Shown here: one piece after another, positions 4,056-64,000 of the stretch
Layout: each line of letters begins with the position of its first letter
Numbering within the stretch: position 1 is the first letter of the stretch
Virus record (IMG/VR): IMGVR_UViG_3300027749_002876
Location: 460,566-524,565 of that record
Length of the DNA stretch: 64,000 nt
Reading direction: 5' to 3' (one strand)
Translations under genes and position numbers: made by a program
Notes under the pieces: generated by a model
Database searches by the model: none
What the model saw: the letters and a program-made list of their open reading frames with translations, nothing else
Told to the model about the DNA's origin: nothing

Positions 4056-5624
4056 TTAACGTGTCTTACGTTTTTTACGACCTGCACCACCCGTATCAGT
4101 ATCAACGGGTTCAATTGTTCTAGGTTCTTTCCTACGTTTTGGATCAACAATATCAGCCGCCGCAACAGTTACGTCATCGCCGTATTCATCAGATTGAACT
4201 ACATCACCTGTAGCACCATCTGGACCTGGATCTTCATAGTCTTGTGCATTTCTACCCAATTTGAAACTGAACCCTGCACTACTTGGTTGTTTTGCACTAG
4301 ATTTGTTTTCTAATGTAACAACACCTTCTAGCTTAGATGGCCATTGGGTTGCAAAGGTCAATTCACCGTTAGCATGATAATCAGTGTATTGTTGAATGAA
4401 GTTCATTTCCAAAACTTGTAAGATAGTATCAGCAAACTCAGGTATTGCATTATCTTCATTCACCGCACGTGATATTGTTTTCTTAATTAGATATACTAAT
4501 TTACCACCTTCTGTAGCAACCTCACTATTAACAGTTGCAAGTAAAGGTTGATATGATGCTGGTAATCTAGAGCCATTGTTTATACTATCAATACTTTGTT
4601 GTAATACTTTAGGTGATGTGGTTTCAAATGGTAAAAACTTATGCCATACTTTAGGAATGCTATTCGGATTTACTTTGAATAAAAAATCCATAATCTTAAA
4701 TGCTTGAACGATAGTACTTGGCCCGGTTTCGTCTTTTCCTGCCTGACACAACTCAATAAGTTTAACTGCGTTTTTTAGTTTACCATTACGCTTGATATCA
4801 TCACTAACCTTTAAGCCTGATACAGCAGGAGCCGCTCCTCCTCCGGTGCCTTTACTTGAAATGTTTAAGCTATGACTTGTTCCTGGATTAGTAATAGTAG
4901 CATAACTATCAGCAATATTATTGTTAGCCGCACTCGGAAAGTTTAATACTAGTGAACCCATATCACCGCCTAGCCATTCTAGGAATTGACGTTTTCTAGG
5001 GAAGCGAGTACGGTCATATAATAATGCTAGTACACCTAAGTATTCACCGGCATAATCAACAATGGCCTTACGTTCTTTTTCTTTTTCTTTTGTTACGTAG
5101 TTTTCAGGTAGTTGAACATATTCACCTGACACAATATAAGTAGCAAGTTGTTGTACTACTTGTCCGTAATCTGTACTAGCTAATACTTGATTGTTCTCAA
5201 TAGTATCGTATAAGTCTGATGCTGGGATATTTCTATCTGTGATTTTAATCAATGATGGTTTTAATAAAACAGATTCTTTTGTACTACCACCAAATTCTTC
5301 ATTCTTAGCTAACTGTGCCATTGGGATTTCTCTACCATCTTTGGTTATAATAGTAATCTTTTCACCGATAAAATCACCTGAATCTTTAAGTTGAGTTAAC
5401 CGATTTACTTCGCTAGCTTTGATATAAATATCTTCACCGGTATAGTTATCAACAAATGGTTTATTAGTTTTTATTTTATTGATTAACAAATTCCATCTTT
5501 CAGGTTTTTTATTAATCTGTGTTGGAGTTAAACCGTTAGCAAACAAAGTAGAAGGAGCGTTAGGATCCTTCTTTTTAGCTTCATCCATAGCTAAGTTTTC
5601 AAGTAATGTTAATAAATCACGCAT
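4056..5624 (-). CDS. Late protein, putative head-internal; possible PD-(D/E)xK-like nuclease domain
   Basis: 522 aa; ATAAATA 6 nt before ATG; N-terminus MRDLLTLLE; IADSY...ISSKG motif; basic C-terminal tail. Confidence 0.6.
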   Translation of the reverse strand: MRDLLTLLENLAMDEAKKKDPNAPSTLFANGLTPTQINKKPERWNLLINKIKTNKPFVDNYTGEDIYIKASEVNRLTQLKDSGDFIGEKITIITKDGREIPMAQLAKNEEFGGSTKESVLLKPSLIKITDRNIPASDLYDTIENNQVLASTDYGQVVQQLATYIVSGEYVQLPENYVTKEKEKERKAIVDYAGEYLGVLALLYDRTRFPRKRQFLEWLGGDMGSLVLNFPSAANNNIADSYATITNPGTSHSLNISSKGTGGGAAPAVSGLKVSDDIKRNGKLKNAVKLIELCQAGKDETGPSTIVQAFKIMDFLFKVNPNSIPKVWHKFLPFETTSPKVLQQSIDSINNGSRLPASYQPLLATVNSEVATEGGKLVYLIKKTISRAVNEDNAIPEFADTILQVLEMNFIQQYTDYHANGELTFATQWPSKLEGVVTLENKSSAKQPSSAGFSFKLGRNAQDYEDPGPDGATGDVVQSDEYGDDVTVAAADIVDPKRRKEPRTIEPVDTDTGGAGRKKRKTR

Positions 5625-5685: not shown

Positions 5686-6825
5686 TTAACTCAACATGAG
5701 GTTAGCCTCACGGCTAACATAATTGTCATAGTCTTTTGCAAGTAATAACACCGTATCATGTGGTGTGTTAATATTCCTTGCTACACGGGCTCTAACATAC
5801 TTGCTTACATTTTTTGCAAGTAACATCAATGTTTCAGGTGGAGTGCTTCGATTTGATGCTACATTCATTTGAACATCTACGACTGGGTCTTTTGCAAGTA
5901 ACATCAATGTTTTAGGTGGGGTGCTTGGATTTGATGCTACTAACTCTCTAACATCTATATCCTTATCTTTTGCTAGCAACATCAATTGTTCGGATGGAAC
6001 TTCTTCCCGATCGGCAATTAATTTTTTTGTTTTTAATGGCATTTTAGATACATCAATTTTAGAGAAGTCGTAATGTGCTCTAATAGCTGATTGTGTATCC
6101 AAATAACTGCTACTACGTAGACGATAGTTGCCTTCAGGACTATTAGAATTTGCAAACTTACAAAATTTATCAACTACTTCTCTAAAGCCAGCTACATTAG
6201 TTCCGTACGCATTATCTGGAAAAAGTACCATATGATTTTTGTAATAATATGGCTTTATCAATATTCGAGCCAATGGGTTATCAATATTTTTATCATTTTC
6301 TCTAATCAAGTATGCAATGATTGCTCCGTTTTTAATGTCTGCTGGTATATATTTATTATTAACAGTCGGACCGTCATCTAAATCCATACATGAAACCCAA
6401 CCACGGTCTGTACTCATACCTGCAATATCAATCGGATCTCTTGAAAACACCACCTCAAGTGGAGAAGCCTGCCGTGTCGCGGCCCTAATTGGGTCATTTG
6501 CAAATTTATTTAATAACTTTTTATCCTTGATTAATTTTCCAATTTTTATTTTTTTACTTGGATCACTAGATTTTTTTGCCAATCCATGCTTATAGTCATC
6601 AATTTCATACCCAAGATTAGAAATTGCATTTTGTAGTTCTTTTTGAGTGGATGAAATTTCTTTACCTGAATCGGAAGATTGTACTTCTAGAGGTGCATAA
6701 ATCCGAGATTTTCCATTAAACACATTATCGTGTATATTAGCATCGTACTCTGACCCTAAATCTTTGTATAATTTTGCAATTTGTTCAGGTGTTAGTGCTT
6801 CAATTAAAAATTCTGTGGCTCTCAT
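5686..6825 (-). CDS. MRAxEF-leader protein with C-terminal LRV/HEAT-like repeats
   Basis: N-terminus MRATEFLIE; 26-aa repeats LMLLAKD...VASNxxTP; ATAAGTA motif upstream. Confidence 0.7.
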   Translation of the reverse strand: MRATEFLIEALTPEQIAKLYKDLGSEYDANIHDNVFNGKSRIYAPLEVQSSDSGKEISSTQKELQNAISNLGYEIDDYKHGLAKKSSDPSKKIKIGKLIKDKKLLNKFANDPIRAATRQASPLEVVFSRDPIDIAGMSTDRGWVSCMDLDDGPTVNNKYIPADIKNGAIIAYLIRENDKNIDNPLARILIKPYYYKNHMVLFPDNAYGTNVAGFREVVDKFCKFANSNSPEGNYRLRSSSYLDTQSAIRAHYDFSKIDVSKMPLKTKKLIADREEVPSEQLMLLAKDKDIDVRELVASNPSTPPKTLMLLAKDPVVDVQMNVASNRSTPPETLMLLAKNVSKYVRARVARNINTPHDTVLLLAKDYDNYVSREANLMLS

Positions 6826-33035: not shown

Positions 33036-33911
33036 ATGAGAATTAACGAATTTATAACAGAGTCTAGTAAGATTTGCCCACAATGTGGAATGAGAGGTTG
33101 CACGTGCAAACCTGGAAAATGTAATTGCAAACCAAAGCCTGGTTATCCAAAACAGGTTGATGAAGCCGCTAATCCAGCACAACAAGCCGCTATAGCTATT
33201 GCTATGAAAAAAGCTGGTAAAAAGCCAAAAAATATGCATGAAGAAGATGAGGGTATGTTTGGTAGATCCAAAAACGATAAACGATATTTAGATAAATTTG
33301 ATCCAACTGAAGTTATGAATATCAGTGATGATCCTAGTAAGGCACATAAAACAACGGGCAAGGGTTCATTAAGAACATCTAAGAAAGATTTAGAATTTGC
33401 ATTTGGACCACCCGGAGAAGATGATACATGGGTTTTAGAATTTAAGAATGGTTTAATTGCCACTATATACCCACAATCTAACAGTGGTGGCATGGATTGG
33501 ATCATAGGTGGTAATCATACAAACACTGAAGATTTTGTACATATGGCTTATTCAGCCGCACTTGATGAAAAACTTGAAGAGGATTGGAACAAGGTCAACC
33601 AGAAAGACAAAACATCTGGTATGAGCCGTAAGGCAGTAAAAGCATATCGTAGAGAAAATCCAGGTAGCAAATTACAAACAGCAGTTACTACTAAACCTAG
33701 TAAATTAAAGCCTGGATCAAAAGCTGCCAAACGCCGTAAGAGTTTTTGTGCTAGAATGAGTGGTAACAAAGGTCCTATGAAAAAGCCTAATGGTAAACCT
33801 ACTCCCAAAGCATTAGCACTACGTAGATGGAATTGTGAGAGTGTAGAGCAAATGGAAGAATTGGTAATGTTAGCAGAACAATTTATCCGCAATCACAAGA
33901 CTAAACTTTAA
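33036..33911 (+). CDS. MRxxEF-leader modular late protein (putative head-internal polyprotein)
   Basis: MRINEFITE; Cys-rich module; AANPAQQAAIAIAMKK module; basic RRKSFCARM...ALRRWNC module; ATAAATA at 32973-32979. Confidence 0.65.
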   Translation: MRINEFITESSKICPQCGMRGCTCKPGKCNCKPKPGYPKQVDEAANPAQQAAIAIAMKKAGKKPKNMHEEDEGMFGRSKNDKRYLDKFDPTEVMNISDDPSKAHKTTGKGSLRTSKKDLEFAFGPPGEDDTWVLEFKNGLIATIYPQSNSGGMDWIIGGNHTNTEDFVHMAYSAALDEKLEEDWNKVNQKDKTSGMSRKAVKAYRRENPGSKLQTAVTTKPSKLKPGSKAAKRRKSFCARMSGNKGPMKKPNGKPTPKALALRRWNCESVEQMEELVMLAEQFIRNHKTKL

Positions 33912-53224: not shown

Positions 53225-54037
53225 TTAATCATTCGTTTTACATTTAGCACGTTTACTATTAGTTAATAGACCGTAATCTACTGGCCATTCTTTACCAGGC
53301 TGTAATTCTTTAGCATTAGCAGGGAAATGATACTTTACACCTGCATATTCTTGTATCTGTGCTAATGGTGCACGAAATTGTGTTAAATCATTACCCAAGT
53401 TAACATATGGTTTCTTATGTGGGAATTGCCATCCAGCAACTTCTTTTGTAGTATTATTAATTACAATCTTGTAGTACCCATGAGGCACAACTACTCCGTT
53501 ACCAATCTTCTCATTGCTAGGTCCATAGTATGCACCTACATAGATAGTAAACGGTTGCTTTAATTGTACTGCCCAGCCACGAATACTTGTTTCTAATAGT
53601 TTCCATATACCACGATTTAAACTACCATGTTGCGGATACATATTAGTCATTAAGAAACTTTCGTATTCTACAATTTGACTATAACTTAAATCACCATCTG
53701 GTGCGGCATGACCTTTGTCATAACCTGTAGCTACATAATCATCAGGCTTTGCACCATCTTTAATACTAGCATCAGCAACAAAAGCGTTTGTACGTGGGAA
53801 ACATCCTAATGCGTTTTCTGGTTTTAATGTATATGCTACATAGACTGGAATCTTAGCAGGAGCATCATATGCTACAAGATATGCTTCACGGCATATAGGT
53901 TGTGATGGTCTTTGTGTTTGTGCGAATCCATATGGACTATGTACTTGACATTGTTGTGGTGGTAATGGTATACGTTGATCCCAAGCAAAGGCATTTATTG
54001 ATAGCATTACTGCTAGTATTGTTAATAGTTTTTTCAT
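53225..54037 (-). CDS. Secreted DNA/RNA non-specific endonuclease (NucA/EndoG family)
   Basis: Signal peptide; YDKGHAAP, ESFLMTNMYPQ, LNRGIW..LE, VPHGYYK. Confidence 0.9.
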   Translation of the reverse strand: MKKLLTILAVMLSINAFAWDQRIPLPPQQCQVHSPYGFAQTQRPSQPICREAYLVAYDAPAKIPVYVAYTLKPENALGCFPRTNAFVADASIKDGAKPDDYVATGYDKGHAAPDGDLSYSQIVEYESFLMTNMYPQHGSLNRGIWKLLETSIRGWAVQLKQPFTIYVGAYYGPSNEKIGNGVVVPHGYYKIVINNTTKEVAGWQFPHKKPYVNLGNDLTQFRAPLAQIQEYAGVKYHFPANAKELQPGKEWPVDYGLLTNSKRAKCKTND

Positions 54038-55230
54038 AATAATATATTTTTGTAATCAACGAAATTTGCATGTCTATCTTCTAGACCTTTGCCGGCAGGG
54101 TTAATTTTTTGTGTTACTGCTTTTGTATCGTTGAAGTTATTTATACTAGGTTTGACACGTGTTTGCCAATACCATACAGCAATTTTGGCTGCAACGTCTG
54201 GTCGTTCTGCTAATTCAGGTTGTTGTAGTAGAGGAATATTTAATGCTGTTTGTGCCATGCGATAATTATCACGACCAGTCAATTGAATGAATCCACGACC
54301 ATGGTATTTTTCACCATCTCCGGGTTGTTTGTTACCTAGTATTTTAGCAGTACGTGGTGCAAACTTAGGATCATATTTTTTAGCAAAATAGTTTGGACCC
54401 ATGCTTTTTTCTTTTAACCTACTGAAGTTCCAAGATTCATGTTTAGTTTGACCCATAAGTTGTGCCAATTCAGTGCCAACAATGCCGGCTTGTCTAGCAG
54501 TTTTTTGCATCATTGTTTCTTCTTGTGGATTATTACTTAGTGTGGTTATATTGTTTGCTACAGCTTTAGGTTCAGGTTGTGCCGGTTCATCTTGTTTATT
54601 TTGTGAATTATAATTACCTATCATACTACCCACTGTAGCGGCACCTAAACTACCTAGTGCAAATCCCCTGCGAGATATATCGTCAGCTATTATGTTACGA
54701 TTCTTTACTTTGCTAATCTCAATACTGATTGGTGTATTGGTAGTCATTGCCCTAAAGATTTTTTCAGTTTCACCCTGACCTGGTTTAAGTTTTGCTGATA
54801 TTATGTTGAATCGTAACCTATTCTTTTTAACACCAATGAACTCTCCTATTAATACTTCATAGTTAGGATAGTTAGGTGACAAATCCACTTTGGGATTTTC
54901 TTGTTCTTCTAAATAAAATACATCTTCATCCGGTGATGTTTGTAATGTTGGATGTGCTGTTAATACAATATATGCATTTTCACCATGATTATCTTTTTGC
55001 TTAGACATTGCTACTCCTAAATCAGGAGTTCTAACTACAAAAGTAATATATGGCATTTTTATTAGTTCATGTCCACGTTTAGTTTCTAATTTATGTAATA
55101 CTCGAAGGACTTTTTCTATAGGAATATTACGTTTTGAACCGTCACTTCTATCATTAATGAAGTGTTTGCTCACAACTAAATATCCGTCTGCAAAGGGTAT
55201 TTCTTTATTAATAAATTCTGTTGCTCTCAT
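54034..55230 (-). CDS. MRAxEF-leader modular protein with C-terminal GH19 chitinase/lysozyme
   Basis: MRATEFINKE; AQLMGQTKHES, YHGRGFIQLTGRDNY, AVWYW, TQKIN...GLEDR. Confidence 0.85.
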   Translation of the reverse strand: MRATEFINKEIPFADGYLVVSKHFINDRSDGSKRNIPIEKVLRVLHKLETKRGHELIKMPYITFVVRTPDLGVAMSKQKDNHGENAYIVLTAHPTLQTSPDEDVFYLEEQENPKVDLSPNYPNYEVLIGEFIGVKKNRLRFNIISAKLKPGQGETEKIFRAMTTNTPISIEISKVKNRNIIADDISRRGFALGSLGAATVGSMIGNYNSQNKQDEPAQPEPKAVANNITTLSNNPQEETMMQKTARQAGIVGTELAQLMGQTKHESWNFSRLKEKSMGPNYFAKKYDPKFAPRTAKILGNKQPGDGEKYHGRGFIQLTGRDNYRMAQTALNIPLLQQPELAERPDVAAKIAVWYWQTRVKPSINNFNDTKAVTQKINPAGKGLEDRHANFVDYKNILL

Positions 55231-55231
55231 A

Positions 55232-57595
55232 TTAGCTCATTATAGGTAATACTTCAATGTCCGTACCTTGATCGTACCCATTGTCTCTTAGCCATTGAAT
55301 AGCTACACGATTAGCATCACGTTGAACATTGCCTATGCCACTAAAACGATGTACTTCACGTCCGTCTGCCATTACTTTCCAAGCACCGGTGAATGAACCA
55401 GGTATTTGTCTTTGTTGTTGAATAGCATTAGTGCTATCTGGGGCGGGTGCAGGTTGATCCATACGTGATAGACCATACCCTCGTCTATCAATACCCTGAT
55501 CCAATAACCAAGCTTGAGCTTTTTCTCTCGCATCTTCAACTGATGTAGCTTGGAATGTATAAACTATACTTTGGTCTGCTGTTCTGTATAGTTTGTAATC
55601 TTGTGTTTCGCCACTTGGTTCATTAGTAGCACGAATTGGTTGTGCTAGTATAGGTTCACTATCACCAACACGTCTTATACCAAATATGTCTCTAGCTTGT
55701 CTTGCTGGAAATCTGTGTGGACCGTGTTCAAGATAATCATTTAGTCGAATCAATGCTTCTCTATCATTAGTAATGCCTTCAGCATCCTCTACCTTTCTAT
55801 TAGTATCCAAATTAAATATTTCATATTTTGGTTTATCATCTTTAGGTTCTTCAAACTTACGAACTGGATAAACAGCGGCAGCAGTTAATGCACCTAAACG
55901 AATGTTCCATTCATCTGATGCTTTTTGTAGTGCTTCTTCTTTACTTGTAGCAACAACTTCAATACTTGCACCACTACGGCCACGACCTTCTTTATCAACA
56001 CGATACCAATACTTTTTGCCAACTTCATTGTCAGCCTTTACTTTACGTTCTATCTGTGCTTGTTTAACAAAGCTACGTAATGCAGCCTTTGGTAACTCAC
56101 CTGCGGCATACTTAGCAAAGTATTGAATCGTATCTGTATTATCTTTACTTGGCTCTAATAACTTATAAAGTTTTTTTAGATATTCTTTTCTATACTTCTG
56201 TGGGTCAACTGCGGCATCCAGTGCTACAACAAATCGTAACAGTGTGTTCTCAATCTTAGGTATATCAGTATCCAACCAATCACCTCCCGGGCTACGAAAC
56301 TCAATGTAACCATCTTTAGTATTGATACTTGTATATTTGGCTGTTGAACCACTATGAACTAGTTTGCTAGCAATATCACTTAGTCCACTTTTCATTCCAT
56401 CTAACAACTTTTTAGCGTTTGCTGGATTTTCTCTAATGTTATCTTTAACTTGTTTCAACGCACTCTTGCAAAAAGTGTTACCTTCACGGTCGAACTCTTT
56501 CAATATATATTCGTCACCTAATAGTAATGCTAGTTTAACATAGTCAAGCTTTTCTCTACTGAAGTCAGGAACACTTACGTTGATATGTAAGCCGGTACTA
56601 TCATTCGTATAGCAACCTGTTTTCTTAGCCCAAGCAACAACTTTGTTGAAGTCAGTTATCATTTCATCTATTGGCATTGGTGGACTTACAAACTCTAATC
56701 CAGCAGAACTGTAATCATCTGGCTCTAAGCTACCATCAGGTTCAACTACATAGTGACCTGCTTCTCTACGAGCACCGTGATAACGTTCGCTTGTATTGAC
56801 TGGCTTACCAATCATTCTACTGAACTCATCACCAACATCATCAACGCTTAAGTCACCACCATTGTCGGGATAAAACCAATGTGGCCAAGTAATATCATAG
56901 TTACTTTCAACGTCTTGCATTGTATAAAGACCTTCACTTTCTAACCAATCATTTTCGTCTGGCCAATCAGTTTCATCCATCCACTTTTCACGTGCATTGT
57001 CATACAATCTAGATTGTTCATCCCATTCTTCTTCAACAAACTGGTCGAACTTTTCACTTGCTAAATCGTGTGCTTCTTTCCAGTGTTTCCAAGCTTCATT
57101 GCCTTCTGTTTCACTGCGTTTAGATATCTTACCTGCTTTGTTCGCCGCTTCCTTTTGTTCATCTGTTAAGCCTAATTGGTCATACGCTTCATCAAGTGCG
57201 GCATCTTCATCAAACTCACCTTCACTTTCAATGTATTCACGTAGATAATCTTTACCTTCACTATCCCATTGTTCGCTACGTCTTTCATCTGCCCATTCGT
57301 GATAACCTTCAGTTAGCTCATCAACTAAACTATCTACTTCTCTAAGACCATTGTAGTTACGGTCATAGAAAAAGTTGCGTATGTTTTGAATACTACCAGC
57401 ACTTTCATCACTATCATAGTCAGCTTCTGGATCTCCGTCACCTTCTTCTCGTTTAACGTTTGGAACAATCATCTCAAATTCCATACCAGCCTGAGCACCA
57501 GTCTTAGCAGCCTCTTGCTTTAACCGTGTAGGATTCATTGCTACTTCGTCAAGTATCTCTGTATCTTCTAATATTATAAAGTCTGTTGCTCTCAT
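55232..57595 (-). CDS. MRAxEF-leader putative amidoligase (COOH-NH2 ligase) protein
   Basis: MRATDFIILE; GMEFE, EPDGSL, GLEFVSP, TNDSTGLHIN, KYTSIN, IEFRSPGG. Confidence 0.8.
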   Translation of the reverse strand: MRATDFIILEDTEILDEVAMNPTRLKQEAAKTGAQAGMEFEMIVPNVKREEGDGDPEADYDSDESAGSIQNIRNFFYDRNYNGLREVDSLVDELTEGYHEWADERRSEQWDSEGKDYLREYIESEGEFDEDAALDEAYDQLGLTDEQKEAANKAGKISKRSETEGNEAWKHWKEAHDLASEKFDQFVEEEWDEQSRLYDNAREKWMDETDWPDENDWLESEGLYTMQDVESNYDITWPHWFYPDNGGDLSVDDVGDEFSRMIGKPVNTSERYHGARREAGHYVVEPDGSLEPDDYSSAGLEFVSPPMPIDEMITDFNKVVAWAKKTGCYTNDSTGLHINVSVPDFSREKLDYVKLALLLGDEYILKEFDREGNTFCKSALKQVKDNIRENPANAKKLLDGMKSGLSDIASKLVHSGSTAKYTSINTKDGYIEFRSPGGDWLDTDIPKIENTLLRFVVALDAAVDPQKYRKEYLKKLYKLLEPSKDNTDTIQYFAKYAAGELPKAALRSFVKQAQIERKVKADNEVGKKYWYRVDKEGRGRSGASIEVVATSKEEALQKASDEWNIRLGALTAAAVYPVRKFEEPKDDKPKYEIFNLDTNRKVEDAEGITNDREALIRLNDYLEHGPHRFPARQARDIFGIRRVGDSEPILAQPIRATNEPSGETQDYKLYRTADQSIVYTFQATSVEDAREKAQAWLLDQGIDRRGYGLSRMDQPAPAPDSTNAIQQQRQIPGSFTGAWKVMADGREVHRFSGIGNVQRDANRVAIQWLRDNGYDQGTDIEVLPIMS

Positions 57596-58567: not shown

Positions 58568-59443
58568 TTATGTTGCCTTTTTCAACTTATTCCATTTATC
58601 ATATATATAGTTTTTCAACTCTATTGTATTTTTAATTTCATTGTCGTTCATGTATTTAATCAACTTCACAGCACTAGCTCTATCTCCTGCATCTGGCTTA
58701 CGTGCGTTACTTAAATCAACACCTATGTTATGATCGCCTGTAGTATCGTGATACCATAACAGGTTCTTTAGTTGTCTCTTTGCTCTATCGCTTAGATATT
58801 CCTCTTTGTCTTTTTCAATCAACTCAATCCAAGGCTTAACAAAGTCAGTTGGCTTACGAGTAGCACCTCTAGTTGGTTGACCCTTCAATACATCTTTGGC
58901 TTGACTTGGCTGAACACTCTTACGTGTATCTAATAATCTCCAAGCACTCTCATTTGTATAAAGATATGCTGGTATATCTTTTTGTTTAGCTGTTATCATT
59001 ATTTGCCGTGTTTGTGGGCTACGATATTCATTTTGTTCTTTTAATAAGATATGTATCTCTGTAACAGGTGTCATTGGTATACTTGGCTCTTTGCTGAACA
59101 CTCTATCTTCTGATTCACGTGTTCTAGTACCATCACTTTTTAACCAAGCACTATTCCAATAGTCTATTGGCTTAACAATGTATCTACTGTTGAACCAATC
59201 ACCGTTCATTTTAAACATTACACCACCCGTACCAACATATCTATGATAGTCACCAGTCGGTGTTCTTGTTAAACTTAAGAAGTATGGATAACCTTTTGGT
59301 GCATAATCTTCTTCGCTACTATTACCTGTTACACTTGCTAGTTCAAAGTTACCTGATTGTAGAATCTTTAATGCGGCATTGGTACTAGTGTAATGAAATA
59401 CTACGCTGGTTGCACGTTCTATTAAAAACTCGTTTGCTCTCAT
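58568..59443 (-). CDS. MRAxEF-leader protein, possible ADP-ribosyltransferase fold
   Basis: MRANEFLIE; VFHYT, FLSLTR, RESEDR. Confidence 0.5.
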   Translation of the reverse strand: MRANEFLIERATSVVFHYTSTNAALKILQSGNFELASVTGNSSEEDYAPKGYPYFLSLTRTPTGDYHRYVGTGGVMFKMNGDWFNSRYIVKPIDYWNSAWLKSDGTRTRESEDRVFSKEPSIPMTPVTEIHILLKEQNEYRSPQTRQIMITAKQKDIPAYLYTNESAWRLLDTRKSVQPSQAKDVLKGQPTRGATRKPTDFVKPWIELIEKDKEEYLSDRAKRQLKNLLWYHDTTGDHNIGVDLSNARKPDAGDRASAVKLIKYMNDNEIKNTIELKNYIYDKWNKLKKAT

Positions 59444-62608: not shown

Positions 62609-64000
62609 TTATTCATTTCTAGGCAATACGAATACTCTACCGCCTGCTAAAATAGCCATATAGTTTCCTATGCCACGCTCACCCATTACAGCTTGGGGGA
62701 TAACAATTTGTTGCCCGCCGCGTGGTCTGATGCCACCAGGTTCTAACATAATCATTTTATATTCTTGTCCATCAACTGTAACAGTACCTGCTTGTCTATC
62801 AGCACGTTCTGCACGAACTAATCCTTGACCGGGTATAGTTGCAGTAGATGGTGTTGCCGCCGGAGCTGGATCAGTTGCTTGTTGTGTAGCAGTGGGTTTC
62901 ATTCCACCTACTTGATTACCGTCAGCATCATATGTTACACGACCGTGTGCGGCACCTGTACCTAATGCCATTGCACCAGTCAATGCGGCGGCACCTAATT
63001 TTTGTTTCCAACCTTCGTCTACATTTTCATTAGACTTTTTCTTTGTATCAACATTGATAGCTTTACCACTACGATCTGGATTAGGATCTTCTCTACGCTT
63101 ACGTTGAGCGGCACTTGCACGACCCTTCTTACCTAAACTATGCGCTTTACTTTGAGGCAAGCATTTTGGTTTACCTTCTCCTGGTTCTCTAGCACACGGA
63201 CCTTTAATCTTTCCTTTAGTATCCATGCGAACCCATTTTTCTTTGTTGAACCAATCGTGCAAACTTTCATCTGCTTGTTCAATACCTTCTAGTATAGAAC
63301 TTTCATTCTTCTTTCCACCGTTGCCCCAGTTACTTGCACCTTTTTTACGACATTTAACTAATGCCCCAGACGCATAAGCACTTGGCCATACTTTATAACG
63401 ACTCTTTACTTTATAGTAGCAAGCATCTTTCTTTTCGTTCATTAGTTCTTCGCTAACCATTTCACCACCACAGTGTGGGCAACTATGTTGTGCTTCCGCC
63501 ACACCTTGCTGACCCGGCACTGTATCAACAATGTTTATCATTTTATCAGGAACTATTTGTACAGGAACATTGCCGTTGTATCCGGCGGCTTGGTATGCGA
63601 TAAATCTATGATTCCCATCTATTACAAAAAGTTTACCTTTGTTATTCCAAACAACTAACGGACCTAATTTCCCATTTTGTTTTAGTTGTGGTAAAAGATT
63701 GTTATTGACCCATTGAGCAACCTTTGGATCCTTCATTGACTTACCATTTTCCCACATTTGTAATTTATTAAAAGGTGCTTCAGTTACTGGCAAACTTTTC
63801 TTTATCCTGTCATCAACAGTAGCACCTTTATAAGCAGGATTTGTGTAGATAGTTACTAGTTGCTGTTCCAAGGCTTCCGCCACACCTTGCTGTCCTAGTA
63901 ATGATTGCACCCAAGGAATGAACGTGTTAATGATCCAGTCATTGTGCTGTTTGCTTTTGTCCAGTGTGCTGGAATCTGCCACACGACCGTTTATGGTCAC
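62609..64000 (-). CDS. Modular polyprotein-like late protein (5' end beyond window) with ParB-like domain
   Basis: QQGVAE x2; VIDGNHR ParB motif; CPHC; DACYYKVKSRYKVWPSAYASG and WFNKEKWV...KCLP modules; internal signal-peptide-like segment. Confidence 0.75.
   Translation of the reverse strand: MTINGRVADSSTLDKSKQHNDWIINTFIPWVQSLLGQQGVAEALEQQLVTIYTNPAYKGATVDDRIKKSLPVTEAPFNKLQMWENGKSMKDPKVAQWVNNNLLPQLKQNGKLGPLVVWNNKGKLFVIDGNHRFIAYQAAGYNGNVPVQIVPDKMINIVDTVPGQQGVAEAQHSCPHCGGEMVSEELMNEKKDACYYKVKSRYKVWPSAYASGALVKCRKKGASNWGNGGKKNESSILEGIEQADESLHDWFNKEKWVRMDTKGKIKGPCAREPGEGKPKCLPQSKAHSLGKKGRASAAQRKRREDPNPDRSGKAINVDTKKKSNENVDEGWKQKLGAAALTGAMALGTGAAHGRVTYDADGNQVGGMKPTATQQATDPAPAATPSTATIPGQGLVRAERADRQAGTVTVDGQEYKMIMLEPGGIRPRGGQQIVIPQAVMGERGIGNYMAILAGGRVFVLPRNE
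63492..63892. repeat. Exact 20-bp direct repeat flanking ParB-like domain
   Basis: gcttccgccacaccttgctg at 63492-63511 and 63873-63892 (encodes QQGVAE on minus). Confidence 0.9.

Follow-up and report, generated by a model that had tools for sequence, protein, structure and literature searches.

Introduction

In bacteriophage T4, the injected internal proteins are hypervariable, and a capsid-targeting sequence of ~10 residues is their sole conserved part (PMC3012670, PMC9958956, PMC9026906). The subject of this report is a 27-residue segment that may add an export signal to proteins of a similar kind. It lies at positions 62942-63022, on the minus strand, of a 64,000-nucleotide stretch, referred to below as the window, which makes up the final 64 kb of the 524,565-bp IMG/VR record IMGVR_UViG_3300027749_002876 (record positions 460566-524565). 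There, deep inside a mosaic "polyvalent" open reading frame (ORF), a candidate cleavage site ending in glutamate (Glu) is followed directly by a sequence laid out like a Sec-type signal peptide. The reading put forward here, which is plausible but tentative, is that a Glu-specific gp21-type site, [LIVM]-x-E/G, is joined to a Sec-type signal peptide or anchor (W-K-x-K, a 13-residue core, G-A-x-A/R-V) in a capsid-targeted mosaic late protein; a slash marks the predicted cut throughout.

Several described systems share parts of this arrangement. As in the T4 internal proteins IPI, IPII, IPIII and Alt, the proteins concerned begin with a short leader ending in [LI]-x-E (MKTYQEFIAE in T4; MSKILKGLLNE, MRAxEF[LIV]xE and M[KR]IN[ED]I[IL]xE here), and they are accompanied by a Glu-specific S77 protease, an aligned capsid propeptide site and a clustered, hypervariable set of cargoes (PMC3012670, PMC9958956). 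Those of T4, in contrast, are single, small proteins that are cut once after the leader and act in the cytoplasm, whereas the carriers here are mosaics of up to >1600 residues with many internal Glu sites, whose predicted fragments would start with Sec-type or twin-arginine (Tat)-type signals. Ejection or inner-body proteins of the phiKZ/SPN3US type are likewise head-internal, cut C-terminal to Glu by a gp21-related protease and then ejected (PMC9026906, PMC10052503), but they belong to another phage lineage and their fragments have no reported export signals. The carriers also resemble the polyvalent proteins (Iyer et al. 2017, PMC5512222), which are large mosaics of shuffled modules encoded beside virion genes and have been proposed to be DNA-delivered effectors that are processed into units. 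They differ in that no zincin-like MPTase or autopeptidase was detected in Pfam or PHROG scans, and processing by the head protease is proposed instead. The terms "signal peptide" and "transmembrane" occur zero times in that paper (PMC5512222), and export signals lie outside the described polyvalent repertoire.

The SAR (signal-arrest-release) domains of phage endolysins are similarly Gly/Ala-rich, weakly hydrophobic and Sec-engaging (PMC7143992), and a similar segment precedes the GH19 domain in relatives and in the ORF at 54034-55230 of the window. SAR domains are, however, N-terminal and uncleaved, whereas the present segment lies inside its chain behind a Glu site, has an AxA end and is joined to a cargo that is not a muramidase. 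With the Sec signal peptides of Gram-negative bacteria and of the phage itself it shares the n/h/c layout, small residues at -3 and -1, a polar -2 and a total of 24 residues, while differing in its internal position, in the acidic residues before it, in Arg at +1 and in a core that is both weaker and far more conserved. Embedded topogenic signals that set fragment boundaries are familiar from polyproteins of the flavivirus type, in which they act co-translationally at the endoplasmic reticulum and need no unmasking beforehand; in the present proposal, exposure of the signal would depend on a viral protease, and export would follow translation and take place in another cell. No description of prohead-protease-exposed signal peptides in phage head proteins or polyproteins was found in full-text literature searches. 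What the locus appears to combine is a T4 internal protein (leader and Glu cut) with a Sec/Tat signal or SAR-like segment in a polyvalent-like mosaic; the parts are known, and the combination would be new.

Anatomy of the cassette

The minus-strand translation of 62942-63022 is VDEGWKQKLGAAALTGAMALGTGAAHG, and the layout of these 27 residues, VDE/GWKQK-LGAAALTGAMALG-TGAAHG, can be divided within its ORF as follows.

62609-64000, minus strand: mosaic "polyvalent" ORF, C-terminal 463 codons and stop; the 5' part lies beyond the window end
63014-63022, minus strand: V-D-E, candidate T4 gp21-type prohead-protease site (P3 aliphatic, P1 Glu), adjoining the signal-like segment
62999-63013, minus strand: n-region G-W-K-Q-K, net charge +2, with P1' Gly and Trp kept across the family
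62960-62998, minus strand: h-region LGAAALTGAMALG, 13 uncharged residues, Gly/Ala-rich and weakly hydrophobic
62942-62959, minus strand: c-region TGAAHG (-3 Ala, -1 Gly), candidate signal-peptidase-I site, followed by Arg-Val

The full carrier gene is available through a twin copy of 99.6% identity elsewhere in the record (L004:3622-7143, minus strand), which encodes a protein of 1173 aa (P0002); the cassette segment corresponds to its residues 1037-1063, and to residues 327-353 of the 463 that are visible in the window. A first-pass annotation of this DNA had described an internal signal peptide about 330 residues into the visible frame, with n-, h- and c-regions, starting exactly after a Glu site and with no Met at the junction, and on each of these points its description was accurate. 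No in-frame ATG, GTG or TTG occurs in the 29 codons before the basic n-region, and start-type codons are found only inside the hydrophobic core; an internal translation start that would expose the signal is ruled out, since no in-frame start codon precedes the n-region.

A diverged counterpart in the record (P0003, 1220 aa; the common 3' part is 78% identical in DNA) has a cassette that reads NENIGE/GWREK-LGAAALAGSMALG-AAGAHA/RV. The family consensus of the c-region is G-A-x-A, of which the window copy, A-H-G with Gly at -1, is a minority form. The h-region is rich in Gly, Ala and Leu, with a mean Kyte-Doolittle hydropathy (KD) of ~1.4-1.6, and its small residues fall on one helical face (A-xxx-A-xxx-G-xxx-A). 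Counted from Leu to the AHG end, the uncharged stretch is 19 residues long with a KD of 1.3-1.6, under the usual transmembrane cut-off of 1.6, and in some variants it is ~16 residues. The N-terminal signal peptides of the phage itself likewise run from MKK through an h-region to AxA, but with a KD of 1.8-3.0.

The segment has the basic n-region, the uncharged h-region of ~7-15 residues and the small residues at -3 and -1 of a Sec signal; what it lacks is the N-terminal location, lying as it does 1041 residues into the ORF, and the uncharged start of the mature part (Arg at +1 in 135/155 family members). The Tat motif S/T-R-R-x-F-L-K is absent from it, with K-Q-K and no Arg-Arg in its place, and although the composition fits a SAR domain, the segment is internal and the cargo has no muramidase signature. 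Strictly, the segment is not a signal peptide, being internal and followed by Arg at +1, and the protein is neither a SAR endolysin nor an MPTase-processed polyvalent protein.

Conservation and spread

A cassette profile was searched against 1.84 billion cluster representatives (E<=1e-3) and matched 256 of them, 100 at <=1e-10, and a scan of IMG/VR with the cassette alignment (A1) gave 38 loci. The cassette was internal in 38/38 of these loci, at 31 to 1333 residues into the ORF, and in essentially all of the 150 cluster representatives listed. Around it, at least 8 unrelated upstream contexts and at least 4 kinds of downstream cargo were found in the 38 IMG/VR loci, and short relatives of the C-terminal part carry the same cassette with differing neighbours on both sides. 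Aligned to the profile, 155 instances gave the following column counts.

P3: L59, V47, I24, M24, F1 (L/V/I/M in 154/155)
P2: D103, E33, A6, G5, N4, T3, K1
P1: E in 155/155
P1': G136
Residue after P1': W138
First basic column: K/R in 145/155; second basic column: Lys in 116/155
Core: 13 residues, in which G, A and L positions hardly vary
-3: A150
-2: polar (N, H, Q, S)
-1: A139, S7, G6
+1: R135
+2: V132

The AxA-type end is kept in ~98% of the 155 instances, and persists even in variants whose c-region is three residues shorter; in A1, the invariant core residues are G16, A17-19, L20, G22, A25, L26 and G27. Among 19 distinct DNA versions of the cassette, synonymous divergence is near saturation (pS 0.66) while nonsynonymous divergence is low (pN 0.17). 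The conservation is therefore old, and purifying selection acts on the peptide itself; recent copying, or conservation at the level of the DNA, is ruled out by the same pS of 0.66. The cluster and small-gene searches never turned up an ancestor that stands alone with its signal at a Met start. The segment is not a product of chance but a real conserved cassette, and we consider it highly likely that it is a selected membrane-targeting cassette coupled to the Glu site.

Glu sites, the prohead protease and the module junctions

In T4, the propeptides that are cut off measure 65 residues in gp23 and 10 residues in gp24 (PMC9958956). The record encodes a protease of the same gp21 (S77) family (PF03420, 94.2 bits, G000 353668-354312), and PF03420 proteases were found in 3/5 large carrier contigs, including a 342-kb contig rated 95% complete. 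L-A-E43 of the record's capsid protein (gp23) aligns exactly with L-T-E65 of T4, and the site before the cassette fits the gp21-type pattern [LIVM]-x-E, with an aliphatic P3, a free P2 and Glu at P1. This suggests that VDE before the cassette is a prohead-protease site, as predicted from its residues.

In some of the proteins, a junction that is generic to the family stands directly before the cassette instead (QQGVAE/GWK, QGMAE/GWK, QGVGE/GWK). The junction (Q/E/K)-G-(V/M)-A-E-(G/A/E) occurs 52 times in 24 mosaic proteins, against ~1 expected, and within the 524-kb record it is confined to the carrier gene, which has two copies in the window:

63494-63505, minus strand: junction G-V-A-E (DNA GGTGTGGCGGAA), context QQGVAE/A
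63875-63886, minus strand: junction G-V-A-E (DNA GGTGTGGCGGAA), context QQGVAE/A

Similarity breakpoints between mosaic proteins lie within 6 residues of [LIVM]xE for 54% of the starts and 44% of the ends, compared with 22.5 +/- 2% for random positions. Foreign metagenome contigs cease to match exactly at the GVAE junctions of the window, with loose ends at 63493/63507 and 63874/63888.

The GVAE junction is also conserved as DNA, with 26/48 distinct instances being exactly GGTGTGGCGGAA (L004, L005, L009-L046). Its codons are rare gene-wide (GTG for 77% of Val versus 18%, GCG for 69% of Ala versus 8%), and the DNA consensus is ~[CG]AA GGT GTG GCG GAA G[GC], from which diverged variants keep G-[VMLI]-x-E. 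This conservation at the DNA level with rare codons suggests a double use of the junction, as a putative protease site and as a possible linker for recombination or gene conversion in module shuffling.

Capsid-targeting-like leaders

The N-terminus of P0002, MSKILKGLLNE, resembles the T4 capsid-targeting sequence. The leaders of the carriers fall into the classes MS[SNK]ILKGL..NE, M[KR]A.EF[IV].E, M[KR]IN[ED][IV][IL].E and M.LNDL[FY]E, which are alike to MKTYQEFIAE of T4 ipII/ipIII and to the gp24 propeptide MAKINELLRE, both read from the T4 record. A broad leader pattern, deliberately loose, is present in 43% of the carriers versus 9.8% of all ORFs in the record, a 4.4-fold enrichment. The gene is complete in two small carriers, in each of which a stop lies three codons ahead of the ATG; the proteins read MRINEIIIE-SE-LDE/GWKEK... 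and MKIQDIITE-EQ-IDE/GWKEK..., and their neighbours all start with such leaders. An ordinary secreted protein would start with Met-Lys-Lys, and a leader and a Glu site placed before the signal are sensible if the signal is exposed later.

Other genes with capsid-targeting-like leaders lie in the window at 4056-5624, 5686-6825, 54034-55230, 55232-57595 and 58568-59443 (minus strand) and at 33036-33911 (plus strand), and there is a further one at L004:7145-8215 (minus strand). The leaders of this gene cluster are MRATEFLIE, MRINEFITE, MRATEFINKE, MRATDFIILE, MRANEFLIE, MRDLLTLLE and MKISQIIQE. By analogy, it looks like a large internal-protein locus comparable to the hyperplastic IP region of T4.

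Tat-type and muramidase-linked counterparts

Canonical Tat motifs, [DS]RRGFLKG followed by a Gly/Ala core, occur deep in mosaic relatives and always straight after [LIV][DE]E (P0094, P0018, P0065, P0070; L053, L054), the junctions being VDE/IDRRGFLKG, IDE/IDRRGFLKG, IDE/DLSRRGFLKG and LEE/IDRRGFLKG. LDE/IDRRGFLKG is found in a protein that begins MKANEFLTE, and a small, complete-looking ORF reads MKISEILVE-QE-LDE/ISRRGFLKG. In P0094 (1646 aa), two Sec-type cassettes and one Tat-type cassette stand in one chain, each with its basic side N-terminal; the positive-inside rule cannot be satisfied by these three basic-first signals unless the chain is cut between them, and this topology is the strongest argument against a simple membrane anchor.

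A 610-aa GH19 muramidase of a relative (L049:784-2616; leader MRADDLLNE), an enzyme with a periplasmic substrate, has LEE/DWKS and a Gly/Ala hydrophobic segment directly before its catalytic domain. The window has a related gene:

54034-55230, minus strand: GH19/endolysin-like protein with the leader MRATEFINKE and an internal twin-arginine, Gly/Ala-rich segment, SRRGFALGSLGAATVGSMIG, at 54616-54675

Here the SRRGFALGSLGAATVGSMIG segment stands ~40 residues ahead of the muramidase domain, with no [LIVM]xE immediately in front of it. A protein of 1057 aa that is encoded outside the window (G000 347475-350648, plus strand) reads GIGE/GLGGAGGAALGAMIGTAIFPVVGTAIGAALGGWLGS; its Glu is followed by long hydrophobic stretches of glycine-zipper character, and it is a possible tape-measure or ejection protein.

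A proposed pathway and the evidence that weighs against it

In the pathway that we propose, the leader would carry the mosaic protein into the prohead core, where the prohead protease would cut it behind the leader, at VDE and at the junctions of the QGVAE type. The C-terminal fragment of ~130 residues would then start with G-W-K-Q-K, and, with the acidic NENVDE cut away, the +2 of the n-region would no longer be cancelled, i.e., the signal would be unmasked. The fragments would remain in the capsid and accompany the DNA into the next host. There, the weakly hydrophobic signal, now N-terminal, would take the post-translational Sec route and bring the small cargo domain at the C-terminus into or through the inner membrane, possibly with removal of the signal by signal peptidase I at AxA/AxG.

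A number of observations weigh against this pathway. Basic residues at +1 and soon after are unusual in efficiently exported Sec substrates; the Arg at +1 (135/155), with Lys/Arg soon after it, is atypical for Sec. The hydrophobicity of the core is weak (KD 1.4-1.6 vs 1.8-3.0 for genuine N-terminal signals), and the conservation of its residues goes far beyond that of signal peptides in general, a hint at another role, instead or as well, e.g., helix packing. That MSKILKGLLNE is a capsid-targeting sequence we infer from its likeness to that of T4. The cargo has no periplasmic function recognisable by Pfam, PHROG or fold search, and no carrier was found when the C-terminal part was compared by tblastn with 50,697 records of cultured phages. 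No [LIVM]xE precedes the Tat-like segment of the window (54616-54675). Other hydrophobic segments of the family stood at Glu sites in 5/16 cases versus 2.5 +/- 1.4 expected, which is not significant, and the enrichment of signal-like segments after xxE sites that the first-pass annotation had proposed as a test was not demonstrable in a single-genome scan, where tail-fibre repeats swamped it.

The broader claims of that annotation are partly supported. Its Sec-type signal peptide keeps its hallmarks, which are present and conserved up to and including AxA, and is weakened by the Arg at +1, the core hydrophobicity and the internal position. The general design that it drew from this segment and the Tat-like one finds its support in relatives, with their Tat signals after [LIV][DE]E, and not in the window's segment at 54616-54675. 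For a protease-activated export signal in an injected module speak the invariant Glu, the leaders, the gp21-family protease and the LAE/LTE alignment, while delivery to the host envelope is a step that we infer.

Alternative explanations

The alternative that survives best, although it is unlikely, is a plain internal signal-anchor. The uncut 1173-aa protein would then be bitopic in the inner membrane of the producing cell, with a cytoplasmic part of ~1040 residues, one Gly/Ala-rich helix and a periplasmic tail of ~110 residues that is perhaps clipped by signal peptidase, and neither capsid packaging nor a phage protease would be involved. A 19-residue uncharged stretch with Lys-x-Lys and Trp on one side and Arg on the other is what many single-pass anchors have, a long cytoplasmic domain before a single transmembrane helix is common in bacterial proteins, and the gene, though it lies among late or structural genes, may itself encode no virion protein. 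Such an anchor gives no reason, however, for an invariant Glu with an aliphatic P3 and a free P2 directly before the segment, or for capsid-targeting-like leaders in small complete genes. The variants with 16 uncharged residues are too short for a membrane span, yet keep AxA; chains with two or three basic-first signals and deep Tat motifs cannot be threaded in a consistent way without cleavage; and in the uncut chain the adjacent acidic residues cancel the +2 of the n-region.

Less likely again is a membrane-active or oligomerising glycine-zipper helix, which might form an inner-membrane pore, channel or anchor that aids genome entry or depolarisation after ejection, or might pack in the capsid core. 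The core is conserved residue by residue to an unusual degree, its small residues are spaced i, i+4, Arg at +1 would suit the end of a helix better than a Sec mature region, and AlphaFold2 (AF2) models the core as a helix, with low confidence. Against a zipper helix stands the A-x-A with its polar -2, at a fixed distance and surviving changes in c-region length, which is a feature of signal-peptidase sites; the Tat-type twins at the same position favour export over a pore, and the cassette is found in hypervariable accessory proteins rather than in conserved entry machinery.

The same cassette and the same protease cut could also serve export in the producing cell, which we regard as improbable. 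Fragments would leave the empty prohead and then take the Sec or Tat route, and the timing of lysis or superinfection exclusion would be coupled to head maturation. Core peptides of T4 do escape the prohead after gp21 cleavage (PMC9958956), and GH19 muramidases in relatives and in the window have the same kind of segment, lysis enzymes being active in the producing cell. Fragments of 10-15 kDa or larger, however, far exceed the peptides known to leave T4 proheads, and T4 internal proteins of such size stay inside and are injected (PMC9958956, PMC3012670). Finally, a gene-fusion relic (a trapped former N-terminal signal) or a chance hydrophobic patch, which might be imagined in a mosaic whose modules are separate or recombined elsewhere, is effectively refuted by the 256 clusters, by the near-saturation of synonymous sites in a conserved peptide, by the retention of Glu and AxA and by the failure to find a Met-start ancestor.

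The carrier protein and its modules

The remaining parts of the carrier that are visible in the window are, from its N-terminal side:

63554-63688, minus strand: weak ParB/Srx-like module (VIDGNHRF), visible-frame residues ~105-149
63059-63448, minus strand: zinc-ribbon / DUF5872-like / phrog_727- and phrog_23735-like basic modules
62825-62941, minus strand: start of the mature part, conserved (RVTYDADGNQVGGMKP), then a Pro/Thr/Ala-rich linker
62612-62824, minus strand: C-terminal cargo domain, ~70 aa, beta-rich

ParB-like, zinc-ribbon/DUF5872-like, basic and beta-rich units thus stand in one chain with virion genes adjacent, as is characteristic of polyvalent proteins. The zinc-ribbon/DUF5872-like and basic modules are common to T4-like cyanophages, where they occur in a gene between g15 and g16, and the carrier gene here is located between a homologue of that cyanophage g15-g16 locus gene and a structural gene. 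The cargo domain occurs in other proteins without the signal cassette (P0011, P0012). Neither Pfam nor PHROG returned anything meaningful for the C-terminal 144 residues or for seven small carriers, and neither returned a peptidase family for any of the six segments of the carrier protein. Residues 1036-1173 were modelled with AF2 from an alignment of 13 sequences; the mean predicted local distance difference test (pLDDT) score was 52.7, with only the last ~70 residues reaching ~70, and a wide search with VIA-align gave a best Z of 3.3 and no fold assignment.

Several further observations concern these modules. One module of the family is GFSKEYLQKAADPNR..ISVEKAQELL. In lake metagenomes, contig depth rises 5- to 20-fold at 63040-63500 and 63836-64000 relative to the unique parts of the gene; the two regions are the zinc-ribbon/DUF5872-like and the ParB-adjacent modules, which are therefore common to many co-occurring phages. 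In a contig from an RNA library, 61706 and 63042 of a relative are joined, and the cassette and cargo of the C-terminus are passed over. P0003 (L005:1853-5515) has a second 27-residue segment, SLIYSALIAAAGISGAGIGGAAALGLF, at residues 342-368, which is more hydrophobic (KD 1.76), lacks both a preceding Glu site and a following AxA, and has similar counterparts in P0021, P0037 and P0127. The cassette design is therefore not universal among the hydrophobic modules of the family.

The record and its source

The last 4,089 bp of the record (520477-524565) recur at 172924-177012 with 99.6% identity, which implies a unit of ~347.5 kb. The stretch from base 1 to ~173,000 corresponds to ~350-524 kb, together with the start of the unit, in inverted orientation and at 75-88% identity. 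The T4-type major capsid gene and the S77 (gp21-family) prohead protease gene are each present in a single copy. The 524,565-bp record is probably not one genome but a ~347.5-kb genome and ~173 kb of a related strain in inverted order, and is likely a strain chimera that arose in assembly; because of this related-strain part, the record holds two versions of the carrier gene. A plain 1.5x concatemer as the cause of the duplicate is ruled out by 126,273 mismatches. The region of the finding itself recurs in independent lake metagenome contigs (runs X2, X3) with 0-5 differences.

The nearest capsid proteins, at 64-67% identity, are those of Vibrio phage 2.275.O (348.9 kb), PA5oct and Sinorhizobium phage Phosso, and carrier contigs of 160-167 kb were rated 45-48% complete, with one of 342 kb rated 95%. 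These relatives and ratings identify the source as an uncultured jumbo myovirus that has a T4-type head and a genome of ~350 kb, and the sequence is found in runs from freshwater or lake metagenomes. A T4-like cyanophage was rejected as the source, as the cyanophage matches are confined to other modules, the capsid is nearest to those of 2.275.O, PA5oct and Phosso, and the runs are from freshwater.

Implications

Known injected phage proteins (the T4 internal proteins and Alt, P1 Dar, N4 vRNAP and the phiKZ inner-body proteins) act in the cytoplasm, and modification of the envelope by a phage at the moment of entry, be it for superinfection exclusion, for peptidoglycan remodelling or for blocking periplasmic defence sensors, has to our knowledge been little explored. 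The cassette offers a signature, [LIVM]xE-GWKxK...AxA-RV or [LIV][DE]E-x-[DS]RRGFLKG, with which injected envelope effectors could be mined, and might be a possible engineering part for protein-delivery vectors of the T4 type. It would also link the polyvalent-protein concept to processing by the head protease.

Taken to the level of the clade, the proposal is bolder and somewhat more doubtful than for the single cassette: a group of ~350-kb aquatic jumbo phages may package polyproteins that the prohead protease dices at Glu into effectors, each with its own Sec or Tat signal, which the virion would deliver and the export machinery of the next host would sort, while the need for unmasking would keep the signals silent in the producing cell. 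If true, delivery of this kind would be a route not described before, with unmasking by the protease as its switch, and a portable cut-then-export cassette, in Sec and Tat versions, would be a simple modular answer to how a phage can modify the envelope as it enters.

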